Shown here: one piece after another, positions 47,354 to 64,000 of the stretch
Position numbering within the stretch: position 1 is the first letter of the stretch
Layout: every line of letters starts with the position of its first letter
Origin: Salpingoeca rosetta
Lineage: Eukaryota; Protista; Choanoflagellata
DNA: 64,000 bases
Direction: 5' to 3'
NCBI GenBank assembly: GCA_033442325.1
Contig: JAWQFM010000005.1
Coordinates: forward strand, 1,440,872 to 1,504,871
The notes under the pieces: generated by a model
Database searches by the model: none
Seen by the model: only the letters and a program-made list of their open reading frames with translations
Told to the model about the DNA's origin: nothing
Position numbers and translations under genes: made by a program

Positions 47354-50300
47354 CTAGGCGTTTTGAAAGCCGTTGCTCATGGAGCCAACCAAGCGAAGAG
47401 TACGGGACGTGCGCTGCGAGAGCGATGTACCAAGTGCATTGTCCCTTGTCTTCCCACCCTTGTTTGCACTTGTTGGAAGCGCGGTTGCCGTCTGATGCAG
47501 CCGTTGCTTGAGGGCGTTCAAGGCGAGCGCGCATCGAACATCCTCGCTCACAGACTGCTCATCGTCGTCCGTGGGCACAAGTGGGTCGTCGTTCGAGTCC
47601 TGGCGGCCCAAAAGCAAGAAAGTCTTCATGGTGCCCTTGCCCTTGATAGTGATGTGACCACGAGACGCAATCACAAAGTCATGGCCCGGGGGCAGCGCCC
47701 GCAGAAACCGATACGTAACCTGTGATGATTGGAAGCGGAGGGGATGGCAAACAACAAAAAGGAGGGAGGCGGGGCAAACGGCCGGGGTGATGAAGAGGGT
47801 GTGAGGTATAAGTTGACCTTACAGAGGCGGTAAGGGTAAGGTACACAGATACAAATTCACAGGCACAGAGAGAGAGAGAGAGAGATAAACATGCCCTGAC
47901 TCCCTGACGCAGACAGCGAAGACACTTCACACACACACACACACACACACACACACACACACACACACACACACACACACACACACACACACACACACAC
48001 ACACCTGGATGCATCCCGGCAGGCCGTTGCTCTCCATGCGCGAGGCGACGTTGACGGTGTCGCCAAACAGACAGTAGCGTGGACGCGCACGCCCGACAAC
48101 GCCGGCCATCAACGGGCCAGAGTGCAGCCCAACGCGGATGCGGAGTGGCTCACCATCGAGCGGCGAGAGCACCGTCTGCGCCGTGCGCACCATGTCAATG
48201 GCCAAGCGGGCGATGCGCAGAGCGTGGTCCTCACATTCCTCCGGGCAGCCCGCCGTCACCATGTACGCGTCGCCAATCGTCTCCACCTTGTAGCAGCCGT
48301 GCTGGTCCGCCAAGTCATCAAACTTGACAAACAGCTCGTGCAGCATGTCCATCACCTCGAGCGAGGGCACTTCTGAGGAGATGTTCGTAAAGCCCGCAAT
48401 GTCGCTGAACAGAACAGTCACCTGGCGCAATGGTTGCATTCCACGTGTGCGTGTGCGTGCATGTGTGTGTATACATGTGTATGTGAATGTAAGCTTGAGA
48501 GGGTGGTTGATTGGGTGAAGGGACACAGATTTGGGGCAATAGCAGAGCAACAGCAGAGCATCTGATGTTCGCACACACAAATGCACAACGCACACACATG
48601 TGCACAACGCACACACATGTGCACAACGCACGTGCTCGTATTGCTCGGCGGCCGGGATCTCGCCACGTGCCAGAGAATCTGCGACCACCTGGGGATTGGT
48701 GAAGAGGAAGAGAAGGAAGGGAATTTGAGACCATGCATGGTGGCAAGAACAATGCACTTACGCACAAGCAAACACTCGTTAACACACGAACATGAACACA
48801 GGCAAACACACACCTGCACACACACCTGCACACCCACACCCACCCACACACACACACACACACACACACACACACACACACACACACACACACACACACA
48901 CACACACACACACACACACACACACACACACACACACACACCGGCGGAAGAATGCTGTGGAGGAGGCCGTCAATCTGCTCCTTCTTGGAGTGAACTTCGG
49001 CCATGGAGCGATCGAGGTCTGCAAGCTTGGCCTCAACCTCGTTCGAGTTGGATGCGGACACGGCCTGGCACATTGCGCTGTACAGCACCTCGCGCCCGTG
49101 GCAGTGGATGGGCATGTCGGCCAGGTCAATGCCTTGCGTGTCGAGTTCCTCAGTTGATTGCACGAGCGGATTACCGACGAAGAGCAGCACCTGCTGTTCT
49201 TCGTCAAACACCACCTCCCCATGCAACTTGATGTTGTTCGTGCGCAGTGCCCGTGCGCGAATGTCATGGGCGTCCATGGAGCTCCGCAGCGAGTGGGCAG
49301 CGGACGTTGTTGCGGACGTGTGGCCCGAAGGAGTACGGCCTGTCATGGGGCAGCCGGAGAATCCACTGAAGCGGGGCACGTTAAGGCGTGCCGAGTCATC
49401 GGCAGCCTCTTTCTCCTGTGCGTGCGCATCGATACTTTGGCGCTCAAACTGCTGGATGAGGTTTGAGTGGCGCTGCTCGCGGTCCTCCTGCGCCAGGCGC
49501 TGCTGCCGCTCGCTCAGCATGGCCGCATACTCCTCCGCGCTCAGCATGCGCTTCGGGTTGGTGACAAAGAGGAACGGCTTGTCGCAGCGCGCCTTGATGT
49601 CCTCAAAGTCCCACGTGGCGTCGATGGGGCGGGCGATGCGGAAGAGCTTCTCCGCGTGCATGCCAATGCAATCCTTCTTCATGCGGGAGGCGAGGTGCTT
49701 GCCCAGGGACACAATCTTCATGTCCTTGTCCACGGCAAAGTGCCAGGGGAAGAGGCGGTTTGTCATGCCGGCATTGAGCTGCGCCGTGGCCATCTTCTCG
49801 TCCGCAGCCGTCGTCAGCGGCTCCTCGGGGAAGCCCCTGTTTGGTGTGGTTCGTGGAGTTGTGGAGGAGAGGGGGGCGTGGGGTCAGGGGAGGGGGGTTG
49901 GGACGTGCGGACGTGCAAAGCAGGAGGCAAGGGTCAGGTACTGCTTCACGTACGTATGACAGTGCAGTGGTGCAGTTGTGTACATAGCACAGATGTGCAC
50001 ATGTACACACGCACAGACAGACACACACACACGCGCACGCACGAACACACATGCACGAACACACACGCACAAACATACACAGGCACACACACACACACAC
50101 ACACACACACACACACAGACACACACACACAAACACGCACACACACACACACACACACACACACACAGACACACACACACACACACACACAGACAGACCT
50201 TGGGTCCATGAAGACGTGGAAGACATCGTGGTCGCTGTCCTTGCCGCGCTTGAGGCGGTGGTGGATGTCAATGTCCAGGTCATAGAGCATCTTGGCGGAG

Positions 50301-51237
50301 CTCTTGAGGGCACCCATCATGAAGGGTGCAAGGCCGCGGCGCTGGCTGTAGTAGTGGATGGACATGGAGTCATCCGGGTTGCGCTCTGGGCGCAGGGAGG
50401 GCACCTTCATCTCGGGAAAGGCGGAGAGGAAGTTGTCGTGCAGGCTGTCCAGGTTGGTGAGCATGGTGAAGAAGTCCTTCCCCAGGGTGCGCAGCACAGG
50501 CTCGTATCCGTTGCGCACAAAGGTGCCCATGGACATCTTGCCTGCCTCGTACATGCACTCCTCCAGCGTCAGCCCCGTCGCCTGTCAGCAGCCATAAGTC
50601 ACGGTCGGTGGTGGTAGCGGTCATGGTGGTGGTAGCGGTCGTGGTGGTGGTGAGCGCGTTGGATGCAATGACAAGTAGTAGATGCACTCGAGGAGAGCAT
50701 GGACGGATGTGACAGCAGCACAATAGCACAATGGCACAGACACACACACACACACACAGACACACACACGCACACACACACTCACGCACACACACACACA
50801 CGCTCACGCTCACACACACACACACACACACACAAAAGCACACCAACACGCACACACAGACACACACACACACACACCTTGGATGCCAGGTCGAGGAAGA
50901 GCATGGTCTGGGTGTCCGAGTAGTGGCGGAAGAAGTCATCGGGAGAGCCGGTGATGTTGAGCTGTTCATACACGTCCTTCAGCGTCTGCTCGCCTCCATC
51001 CTGAGACCGCAGCCATGCTGTCAAGGCCTTCATGACATGGCAGTGTGAGGCAAAGCACCAAGCATGGCATGAGCGAAGGCTCGAACGCTGAAGGGGGAGG
51101 GGGGGTGGCGTGTGGTTGCAAACAGCCAGCAGGGAGGTGCATCATCGCTCACACGTCACGGCATCGCATGCACACTCCGAGGCAGGCGTGATCGCATTCA
51201 CTCGCACTTGTTGTACCTGATGAAGAAATCCGTACAT
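47354..51237 (-). CDS. Soluble guanylate cyclase with H-NOX, HNOBA (PAS/coiled-coil) and class III cyclase domains
   Basis: MYGF start, LTNLDSLHD (haem-ligand His), VPSLR, HYYSQR (YxSxR), [69 protein letters not shown]...[18 protein letters not shown], and [10 protein letters not shown]. Confidence 0.95.
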
Positions 51238-63020: not shown

Positions 63021-63607
63021 TAAAGTCGACATGTGGGCGAGTGAAGCCATCAGTCACCACCCACCTGCAGGATCAACGACACCCCCTTATCCTCTTTGAA
63101 GTGAGTGTTCATTTATTCGTGTCAACAGCCGATAATGAACACAGCAAACATCAACGCTCAACAACAGCAAGCAGCAGCAGTCGTGTATGATGTGAATGCA
63201 GGCAATCCAGAGTTGCAACAAAAAGAAGAAGAAGAAGAAGGGGGGGAACAAACAAGATACTCAATAGAGGCATGACGCGACGGCACATGCCCACAAGACA
63301 GGCACAGCGCACATGCACACGGAAGCAACCAGTCACACACACACACACACACACACACACACAAGCTGGAAGAACGTGTGACATGGAAATCGCCATTGGC
63401 ATTGCTGGCGAGTCACAGGACGATAAACAAAGAAGCGTGAATGGCAACGCACATGGGTCAAGAACAACTGCGATCAGCAGGAGAAAAAACAGAAACAAAA
63501 AGGCCAACAGTGCAGCGGGCAACAACTGCAGCAACAGTCACAGGATGGCAAAGCAACAAATAACTGTATTCACATCAGCCATCTCAAACAAAGTTGCGCT
63601 CATGCCT

Positions 63608-64000
63608 TCATTCCGGCACGCTGCTGAAGCTGAAGGCCGTGTTCCTCGCGCCAGTCAGCGGTTTGGTCACGCTGAACGTCGGGGAAGGCGGGACACCACT
63701 GAACCTGCCGCCAAGCCCGTTGCTGCGTTGCTGCGGACGAGCGTTGCTCGGACCAGAAGGCCCATTGGCCGACGTGGTTCGAGGCAGCCCTTGCGGCCCT
63801 GATGAGGTCGCACTCACGGGGCGAGAGCGTGAGTAAATGCTGCTCTGCATGCGGTACTGCACGCGAATCATGTTCAGCTCATCGCTCAGCTCCTCCGTGC
63901 CGTCGTCTTCGGGCAGCAGTGGCGGCGTGTCGGACCCGTCTTGCTCGCCCAGCACAAGGAACGTCTTGATGGTGCCCTTGCCTTTGATCTCAAGGCGCCC
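63608..64000 (-). CDS. 3' end of a second class III (probably guanylate) cyclase, paralogous to the sGC at 47354-51237; the rest lies outside the window
   Basis: GRLEIKGKGTIKTFLVLGEQDGSDTPPLLPEDD...LSDE aligns with [33 protein letters not shown]...VSED from the last exon of the first sGC. Stop at 63608. Confidence 0.82.
   Translation of the reverse strand, partial: GRLEIKGKGTIKTFLVLGEQDGSDTPPLLPEDDGTEELSDELNMIRVQYRMQSSIYSRSRPVSATSSGPQGLPRTTSANGPSGPSNARPQQRSNGLGGRFSGVPPSPTFSVTKPLTGARNTAFSFSSVPE

Follow-up and report, generated by a model that had tools for sequence, protein, structure and literature searches.

A Salpingoeca rosetta neighbourhood of locally duplicated guanylate cyclase and bZIP genes, probably co-expressed mainly in thecate cells

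A 64,000-nucleotide stretch of the genome of the choanoflagellate Salpingoeca rosetta (contig JAWQFM010000005.1, positions 1,440,872 to 1,504,871; hereafter the window) ends, from its position 47354 onwards, in a block of five genes: two genes for soluble guanylate cyclases (sGCs), here called sGC1 and sGC2, enclose two genes for basic leucine-zipper (bZIP) proteins, bZIP-A and bZIP-B, and one small gene. The block is probably a lineage-specific S. rosetta neighbourhood of local duplicates that is co-expressed mainly in thecate cells. On this account, local duplication would have built the block, its expression would be mainly thecate (substrate-attached), with sGC1 and bZIP-B also expressed in solitary swimmers, and the co-expression would most simply reflect a shared regulatory neighbourhood. 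Recent gene conversion keeps the N-terminal part of HNOBA and the catalytic domain of sGC2 almost identical to those of sGC1. The block corresponds to PTSG_01894-PTSG_01898 on S. rosetta supercontig GL832957.1 (GCA_000188695.1), and we assigned the PTSG numbers through coding sequence (CDS) lengths of 2289, 1416, 1161, 1200 and 1977 nt and through the InterPro content given in the supplements of Fairclough 2013. We followed the locus for 10 kb past the window end, in a segment designated L001 in which the window position equals 71655 minus the L001 position.

Expression and layout of the block

The RNA-sequencing data of Fairclough 2013 cover thecate cells, swimmers, rosettes and chains, and the tables of its supplement were identified by the headers within the files. 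Four of the five genes, sGC1, bZIP-A, bZIP-B and sGC2, fall in the class of genes favoured in 'attach and swim' cells over colonies (1149 of 11,629 genes, Fairclough 2013), and no flanking identifier, from 01878 to 01893 on one side (16 identifiers) or from 01899 to 01931 on the other (33 identifiers), belongs to this class. Since the adjoining class entries in the identifier-sorted list are 01877 and 01932, the island is sharply bounded. A stricter pairwise list of 682 genes holds three of the same four genes. Two of them also appear in the ranking of thecate-upregulated genes: in the comparison of attached cells with colonies the log2 fold change is 5.1 for sGC2 (P 2.5e-21) and 4.7 for bZIP-A (P 8.9e-18). 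Assuming independence, the chance that at least four of five genes fall in a class that holds 10% of genes is about 4e-4. The co-regulation suggested by the original prediction, made from the letters of the window, is thus borne out at the level of cell types, with four genes of the block in the attach-and-swim class and no flanking gene in it. Read counts are given below for the columns ThA2, ThM, ThAM, SwM, RCA1, RCA2, RCAM and CCM, in this order.

sGC1: 150, 722, 850, 458, 35, 43, 67, 17
bZIP-A: 407, 141, 310, 81, 0, 45, 14, 0
bZIP-B: 1788, 6719, 2786, 3505, 1855, 1952, 2995, 427
sGC2: 74, 795, 1404, 86, 27, 26, 50, 23

Public annotation places exactly five consecutive genes across the block. 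The genes and the spacers between them are laid out as follows, in window positions.

47354..51237, minus strand: sGC1, PTSG_01894 (P0001, 762 aa), CDS 2289 nt; from exact spliced protein alignment
50199..50581, minus strand: exon 3 of sGC1, the haem pocket (His105, Y-x-S-x-R), 383 nt, aa 58-184; (GT)n-rich introns on both sides
51238..54271, no strand: divergent spacer between sGC1 and bZIP-A, 3.0 kb between start codons; from the gene calls
54272..55982, plus strand: bZIP-A, PTSG_01895 (471 aa, CDS 1416 nt); splice sites read, annotated product
55983..57818, no strand: convergent spacer between bZIP-A and the small gene; no gene by Pfam, Rfam or coding signature
57819..58220, minus strand: small orphan gene of 133 codons within PTSG_01896; from its codon signature
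60455..61654, minus strand: bZIP-B, PTSG_01897 (399 aa, single exon); from exact gene look-up
61655..63607, no strand: spacer from the bZIP-B start to the sGC2 stop; from the gene calls, with no hidden gene
63608..64000, minus strand, the exon continuing to 64060: last exon of sGC2, PTSG_01898 (P0002, 658 aa as annotated); from translation and exon map

From CDS to CDS, the spacers within the block measure 3034, 1836, 1475 and 1953 bp, and the third of them grows to 2234 bp if the 133-codon open reading frame (ORF) is the real gene. Beside sGC1 the spacers are 773, 702, 313 and 44 bp and past sGC2 they are 935 and 103 bp; the mean intergenic distance in the S. rosetta genome is 885 bp (PMC12572184). 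The spacers are long, as had been noted from the sequence, when those of the block (1475-3034 bp) are set against those on the sGC1 side (44-773 bp). That no further gene lies between the members of the block is likewise upheld by annotation, by Pfam and by codon usage: ten spacer ORFs gave no credible Pfam match (the sole match, to Apq12, had an E of 0.0089 and 16.4 bits at a cut-off of 25), a six-frame codon-usage scan found a coding signature outside the known exons in low-complexity repeats only and no hidden gene in the spacers, and an Rfam search of 51000-59500 returned no family.

The upstream regions yielded no common element. Across the four upstream regions, the 3 kb divergent spacer included, there is no enrichment of cyclic AMP response element (CRE), AP-1, C/EBP, PAR or ACGT-core sites, no 11-mer is common to three of the four, and the upstream regions of sGC1 and sGC2 show no similarity to each other. 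Strongly thecate-specific genes bear H3K27me3 in swimmers according to a 2025 chromatin study, and the long spacers fit with cell-type-specific control. Among the top thecate-upregulated genes of Fairclough 2013 are those for alternative oxidase, prolyl 4-hydroxylase, a dual-oxidase-like haem peroxidase with its maturation factor, and small heat-shock proteins. These genes may point to redox or oxygen physiology as a recurrent feature of the thecate cell, a setting that would suit upregulation of sGC genes.

Local paralogy holds for both gene families, the cyclases and the bZIPs, as had been proposed. The further proposal that the block is a duplicated sensor-plus-response unit does not agree with gene order, orientation or divergence. 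On the minus strand sGC2 is followed by bZIP-B, the small gene, bZIP-A (reversed) and sGC1, an arrangement that is neither a tandem nor an inverted copy of an sGC and bZIP pair, and the cyclases carry recent conversion tracts with a synonymous divergence (dS) of about 0.02 while the bZIPs are merely 27% identical. A long (GTT)n/(AAC)n trinucleotide repeat at about 56130-56270, just 3' of the bZIP-A stop, probably lies in the 3' untranslated region of bZIP-A. Near the other end of the window, at 1340-1446, there is an assembly gap of 107 N.

The cyclase pair and the exon missing from sGC2

sGC1 is encoded by seven exons (51237-51217, 51027-50878, 50581-50199, 49836-48942, 48688-48632, 48421-48005 and 47719-47354) and has a complete HNOB (151.4 bits, Pfam cut-off 25.5), HNOBA (209 bits) and Guanylate_cyc (207 bits) architecture, so that the cyclase lying fully inside the window does carry the H-NOX domain ascribed to it. 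Aligned with human beta1, it retains His105 and the Tyr135, Ser137 and Arg139 of the YxSxR motif, and it has Phe at the position of beta1 I145, which we take, from the I145Y experiment, to be the beta1 counterpart of the distal Tyr. Judged by these residues, sGC1 is a complete haem sGC with the proximal His and YxSxR and no distal Tyr. In choanoflagellate sGCs, ligand preference has been predicted from a distal-pocket Tyr that stabilises O2 (Reyes-Rivera 2022). By this rule, the Phe at the beta1-I145 position and the lack of the distal Tyr mean that sGC1 would exclude O2 and respond to nitric oxide (NO) or CO.

Both cyclases possess class III cyclase residues, namely both metal-binding Asp and the guanine Glu/Cys pair, together with FSDI and KVETIGD motifs, and the catalytic domain of sGC1 holds the Asn/Arg pair in the same single chain. 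The Chlamydomonas sGC 3ET6 is among the strongest solved matches of this domain (E 3.9e-53). Because every catalytic residue sits in one chain, an sGC1 homodimer is plausible, and sGC1 most likely acts as a homodimeric sensor of the NO/CO type that produces cyclic GMP (cGMP). The name 'NO-insensitive guanylyl cyclase III' in the database is a putative label that was assigned automatically.

The sGC1 and sGC2 proteins are 80% identical over 555 aa and their DNA is 95.4% identical over 1314 nt, introns counted. Identity reaches 98.4% in intron 4 and 100% in intron 5, while it is 53-63% in intron 6 and exon 7, and neither intron 6 nor the 3' flank can be aligned more than marginally. Codons 28-57, 186-316 and 484-641 show 0, 2 and 3 synonymous differences, respectively, and not one non-synonymous difference (dS ~0.02), and codons 317-395, 396-483 and 642-762 have dS values of 1.7, 0.75 and 1.0-1.3. 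The cyclases are an old duplicate pair that has been partly overwritten by recent gene conversion. Over aa 484-641 the catalytic residues are 100% identical, and in the unconverted HNOBA/coiled-coil part (aa 396-483) the ratio of non-synonymous to synonymous divergence (dN/dS) is 0.11, which together with the coding signature of the tail exon (see below) indicates that sGC2 has been under selection through most of its history.

A maximum-likelihood tree built from 17 sGCs places sGC2 as the sister of sGC1 (support 91/86), P0003 joins next (82/87) to form a clade of S. rosetta sequences only, and the two sGCs of Barroeca monosierra, a close relative of S. rosetta, pair together. The two cyclases are each other's closest paralogues, as predicted, with the caveat that conversion inflates their closeness. 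The sGC2 tail at the window end is 52% identical to the sGC1 tail over 42 aa. The C-terminal tail that had been noted as shared is present in both; it is no special link between them, because the acidic tail motif is common to the whole choanoflagellate sGC clade. We also rejected, on the same tail, an assignment of sGC2 as the orthologue of the sGC gene on a 4614-bp B. monosierra contig (L007), since 51% versus 42% is too weak a signal and the tree groups the S. rosetta copies.

The H-NOX sGC genes of S. rosetta number at least seven. P0003 (L002 10001-14658, GL832957.1), about 240 kb from the block, adjoins a gene for a hedgling-like cadherin. P0017 and P0014 form a tandem adjacent sGC pair (L003 4399-13581, GL832968.1), likely PTSG_06234 and PTSG_06235, and both are higher in thecate and swimming cells.

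The part of sGC2 inside the window comprises about 12 residues of the catalytic domain and the tail, and the gene extends past the window end to ~66691, or to 66976 if an unannotated mini-exon is counted. Pfam recovers HNOBA at 210 bits, Guanylate_cyc at 197 bits and HNOB at 11.7 bits, the last over profile positions 15-56 of 163. A check of the sequence beyond the window for an H-NOX domain in this second cyclase, as the original prediction had advised, thus came out negative: no working H-NOX domain is present and the haem-pocket exon is absent from the assembled gene. In protein as well as DNA alignments, the counterpart of exon 2 joins the counterpart of exon 4 and exon 3 of sGC1 is without a counterpart; equivalents of sGC1 aa 58-185 were found neither in the sGC2 gene nor in the 359 bp between the flanking exons. 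Because the haem-pocket exon is absent, sGC2 would be unable to sense gas through haem.

The fused intron of sGC2 starts as intron 2 of sGC1 does, passes into an uninterrupted stretch of about 37 (GT) units and ends like intron 3 of sGC1. Long (GT)n tracts directly open most introns of the locus (window 47720-51216 and 55510-55804; L001 5092-5449, 6372-6631 and 7316-7594), and the intronic repeats are likely to have been the substrate of the sGC2 exon deletion. In the simplest event, recombination or slippage between two intronic (GT)n tracts would have removed the haem-pocket exon. Conversion tracts abut both sides of the lost exon, so that the loss may postdate the last conversion. In the B. 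monosierra gene on L007 the haem-pocket exon is intact and 83% identical to aa 57-185 of sGC1, and the tail motif is present too; the loss is hence specific to S. rosetta sGC2.

Since exon 3 measures 383 nt, its loss shifts the reading frame. The annotated sGC2 model regains the frame through a GT donor that lies 2 nt further into the repeat (LASK-V-GFPEEP), and a donor shift of 2 nt is possible because the 5' splice sites stand at the edge of a run of GT donors. Upstream, the unannotated mini-exon ATGTATGGATTGATGCATCAG (MYGLMHQ) at L001 4679-4699, equivalent to window 66976-66956, is followed by GTAA, and a CAG acceptor precedes L001 4940, ahead of the next sGC2 exon. On the basis of this mini-exon and its proper acceptor, the public PTSG_01898 model probably starts 15 codons too late. 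If translated via the +2 donor, sGC2 would be a haem-less cyclase, acting alone without haem control or pairing with sGC1.

An alternative that we consider possible, if unlikely, is that sGC2 is a young pseudogene or non-coding duplicate whose downstream ORF has been refreshed by conversion from sGC1. The canonical donor, AAG|GT, leads to a 134-codon product, the frame-keeping donor 2 nt into the GT run has a poorer exon-side context, and the catalytic domain of sGC2 offers no independent divergence on which constraint could be judged. Against such a pseudogene stand the constraint in unconverted parts (dN/dS 0.11 over aa 396-483 and 0.37 over aa 642-700), the unique tail exon, a 150-codon ORF that scores +0.25 in frame versus -0.40 and -0.31 out of frame, the retention of the MYGLMHQ mini-exon with good splice signals, and thecate transcript levels that are high (normalised 96-170) and unlike those expected under strong nonsense-mediated decay. 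The constraint signals integrate the time before the deletion as well, and so are not decisive against a pseudogene.

We regard it as improbable that the exon is missing from the assembly rather than from the genome, an artefact in which two microsatellites were joined and sGC2 is an ordinary H-NOX sGC. The flanks of the gap do lie in the tracts with dS ~0.02, aa 28-57 being identical in DNA, the junction is the pure (GT) run of ~37 units, and a single assembly is on record for the sGC2 protein. On the other hand, L001 contains no N runs, the intron has sGC2-specific differences from sGC1 on either side of the GT run, and the transcript-refined gene set, in which 98% of models are supported, lists PTSG_01898 without a Haem-NO-binding InterPro domain.

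The bZIP genes and the small orphan gene

The two bZIP genes resemble each other in the region that defines them. bZIP-A has two exons (54272-55509 and 55805-55982) separated by a (GT)n-rich intron that opens with GT (55510-55804); its basic region, SRMAARRRR, ends exon 1 and its zipper lies in exon 2. bZIP-B has its bZIP domain at about 60857-61129 (aa 176-266), with the basic region NRLAARRHR. The basic regions of the two are identical at 16 of 32 positions (E 9e-7), and spliced bZIP-A aligns with bZIP-B through basic region and zipper with no gap.

Neither protein reaches the gathering score of a Pfam bZIP family, bZIP-B attaining 7.6 bits with bZIP_2 (cut-off 22.3) and 8.0 bits with bZIP_Maf and bZIP-A giving no match, and the 2013 annotation lists both as 'NoDomain' (Fairclough 2013). 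The relatives P0026-P0028 also stay under the Pfam bZIP cut-off, with 17.7-18.6 bits. The Atlas clusters nearest to bZIP-B are all bZIP. A word-index protein search with the bZIP-B domain found no match, and an exhaustive search that used residues 1-270 of bZIP-B yielded seven proteins: three from B. monosierra, three from metagenomes and one spurious plant coiled coil. One of the Barroeca proteins, P0023 (699 aa), is the orthologue of bZIP-B because the match extends to the N-terminus (46% over 76 aa) as well as the bZIP domain.

Family membership was examined with a profile, A1, built on this small set. Invariant in the family alignment are L, R, N, R, A, A, H, R, two heptad Leu and two Gly, and the signature reads RKRxxELxP...NRxAAxRHR...SG(R/K)L. 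Among solved chains, A1 matches C/EBPbeta (E 8.5e-6) and ATF-2 (6.6e-5), followed by FosB, c-Fos, ATF-4, C/EBPalpha and CREB, all in register; bZIP chains account for 29 of the 33 matches up to an E of 1 and for every one of the top 29. With a profile made without the S. rosetta rows, bZIP-B scores 83.7 bits, bZIP-A scores 27.5 bits (E 3.7e-7) and nothing else in the ~180 kb scanned is matched. In the bZIP consensus, an Asn stands in the spacing N-x7-R and heptad Leu follow at R+10+7n. bZIP-B has the invariant Asn and Arg and Leu at R+24, +31, +38 and +45; in bZIP-A, Ser takes the place of the invariant Asn, and Leu or Val occupies R+17, +24, +31 and +45, with the register kept. Both proteins are, by their profile matches, real if divergent bZIPs of one small family, and they would be dimeric DNA-binding factors. 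Two related bZIP-like genes, as originally described, are therefore present, joined by their basic region and a common family profile although both score under the Pfam thresholds.

That the two are each other's close paralogues, by contrast, was not confirmed. They are 27% identical, and bZIP-B is closer to Barroeca proteins (45% to P0030). bZIP-A is the outlier of the family, with Arg for the family His and 20-28% identity to every member. As bZIP-B has an orthologue in Barroeca and is closer to Barroeca proteins than to bZIP-A, A and B must have separated before S. rosetta and Barroeca did. The two genes are old neighbours, most likely from an ancient tandem duplication, and were not copied along with the cyclases.

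Both bZIPs contain a short basophilic stretch, PRDRRSSA at aa 88-95 of bZIP-A (~54533-54556) and HPRRSSAH at aa 101-108 of bZIP-B (~61331-61354), and P0023 has IPRRYKRKRS at aa 104-113. This R-R/K-x-S site aligns between bZIP-B and P0023. It could be a phosphorylation site of the type used by cAMP- or cGMP-dependent protein kinase (PKA or PKG), a nuclear localisation signal or a chance match.

PTSG_01896, the remaining gene, is annotated with 386 aa (57819-58979), and its coding-like part is confined to the last 133 codons. There the GC content at third codon positions (GC3) is 0.84 and the in-frame log-odds score is +0.44 (out of frame -0.49 and -0.34), equal to that of a held-out real gene. 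The upstream 253 codons have a flat GC1/2/3 of 0.56/0.56/0.57, an intergenic-like score of -0.16 and a low-complexity composition rich in His, Thr and Gln, and the public model appears to be over-extended at its 5' end.

The product of these 133 codons had been called SERTA-like, a label that we abandon. It does share with SERTA proteins (PF06031) a loose EPxL...V......R..Q stretch, but PF06031 was not matched and no Pfam family was at E<=10 (nor, for a 416-aa ORF, at E<=0.1), the nearest Atlas clusters (<=0.83) include no SERTA, and a word search returned no homologue. An AlphaFold2 model of the 133-aa ORF has no confident fold (pLDDT 45). The small gene is a 133-codon orphan.

Linkage, function and comparison with known systems

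Linkage outside the block was followed where contigs allowed it. A 5.8 kb Barroeca contig with the bZIP-B orthologue holds no match to an sGC or to the small ORF, with just 1.2 kb upstream and 2.5 kb downstream covered; the Barroeca sGC contig ends 43 bp past the stop, and all Barroeca contigs compared are at most 5.8 kb long. S. rosetta and Monosiga brevicollis share little synteny overall. No bZIP-family gene was found beside the other sGC loci inspected in S. rosetta, P0003 and the tandem pair on GL832968, and searches of the literature by accession and PTSG number found the five genes unmentioned in main texts.

Several observations weigh against the interpretation of the block as a co-expressed neighbourhood of local duplicates. 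Upregulation in thecate cells is widespread (1,410 of 11,629 genes), and the tandem pair PTSG_06234/06235 has the same thecate and swimmer bias with no bZIP neighbours, so that co-expression need not mean shared function. bZIP-B shows a bias of no more than about twofold, and PTSG_01896 is missing from every differential-expression list. The splice form of sGC2 and the transcription of the small gene rest on public annotation and published counts. If the canonical donor is used, sGC2 meets a stop at codon 134 and possibly gives no full protein, and its exon loss could, though this is improbable, have arisen in assembly, through collapse of near-identical copies at a microsatellite.

A more ambitious reading is that the block is a gas-to-transcription unit, in which cGMP made by sGC1, with or without sGC2, acts through a cGMP-dependent kinase or a direct effector on the bZIPs and linkage is kept by joint function. 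NO-cGMP-PKG signalling to the bZIP protein CREB is known in animals, and the block likewise combines sGC genes with bZIPs that carry a basophilic kinase site, known here from sequence. The unit would account for the sharp co-expression island of four of the five genes, for the 3 kb divergent upstream region shared by sGC1 and bZIP-A and for the occurrence of an R-R/K-x-S site near residue 90-110 in bZIP-A, bZIP-B and P0023. We nevertheless hold it to be quite improbable. The basophilic site is generic, and we estimate that a shared 5-mer arises by chance about 1 time in 3; the upstream regions have neither enriched sites of bZIP type nor shared 11-mers; the other sGC loci of S. rosetta have no bZIP-family neighbour; the cyclase and bZIP duplications differ in age and form no unit; and eukaryotic neighbours are frequently co-expressed without a common function. 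The genes of the NO-cGMP-PKG-CREB pathway are not known to be clustered in animals. Very unlikely, in our view, is a thecate gas-response unit of S. rosetta-lineage origin in which an sGC1/sGC2 heterodimer with conversion-matched dimer and catalytic surfaces would send cGMP to the bZIPs via the basophilic site, and in which sensor and transcriptional output would be inherited and activated together as one chromatin neighbourhood.

The co-expressed neighbourhood of duplicates, which remains our preferred interpretation, can be set beside known systems on several counts. sGC1 shares with the atypical homodimeric sGCs (Choanoeca flexa Cf-sGC1, Chlamydomonas CYG12 and Drosophila Gyc-88E) the H-NOX, HNOBA and cyclase domains, the proximal His, YxSxR and the residues for one-chain catalysis; sGC1 is known from sequence, and its ligand preference is predicted from the missing distal Tyr. 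Choanoflagellate sGCs as a class have already been described (Reyes-Rivera 2022).

In the animal alpha/beta sGC, only beta binds haem, and the human alpha1 and beta1 genes are neighbours. sGC1 and sGC2 are likewise two linked paralogues, one without a working haem site, with matched dimerising and catalytic parts. The differences are that animal alpha keeps a full haem-free H-NOX fold whereas sGC2 has lost ~128 residues of H-NOX, that animal alpha and beta divide the catalytic residues whereas sGC1 and sGC2 each carry all of them, and that, according to the sGC tree, the sGC1/sGC2 pair arose inside the S. rosetta lineage.

The bZIP family profile aligns ungapped with the C/EBPbeta bZIP over 72 positions in the canonical register. 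Canonical bZIPs have Ser or Cys before the invariant Arg, whereas the family has His there (Arg in bZIP-A), and unlike solved bZIPs it has ELxP ahead of the basic region and SG(R/K)L after the zipper. In the exhaustive search, the family was found in S. rosetta, B. monosierra and three metagenome proteins only.

The analysis corrects three public gene models, and it reveals linked signalling genes that have clearly evolved in concert through gene conversion. sGC2 would be a natural haem-less sGC variant, in which an exon was lost between intron microsatellites and the frame is rescued solely by a donor move within the GT repeat. Should the pairing of sGC1 with sGC2 be true, the animal scheme of one haem per heterodimer would have been re-invented independently, and a true link from cyclase to bZIP would amount to a path from gas sensing to transcription that predates animals; if that link is false, the block is a set of ordinary neighbouring duplicates under shared regulation. 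Choanoflagellate sGCs give the best view of the origins of NO/O2-cGMP signalling before animals, and in a CRISPR-capable species this locus offers testable items in a co-expression island of sGCs and two previously unannotated bZIPs.

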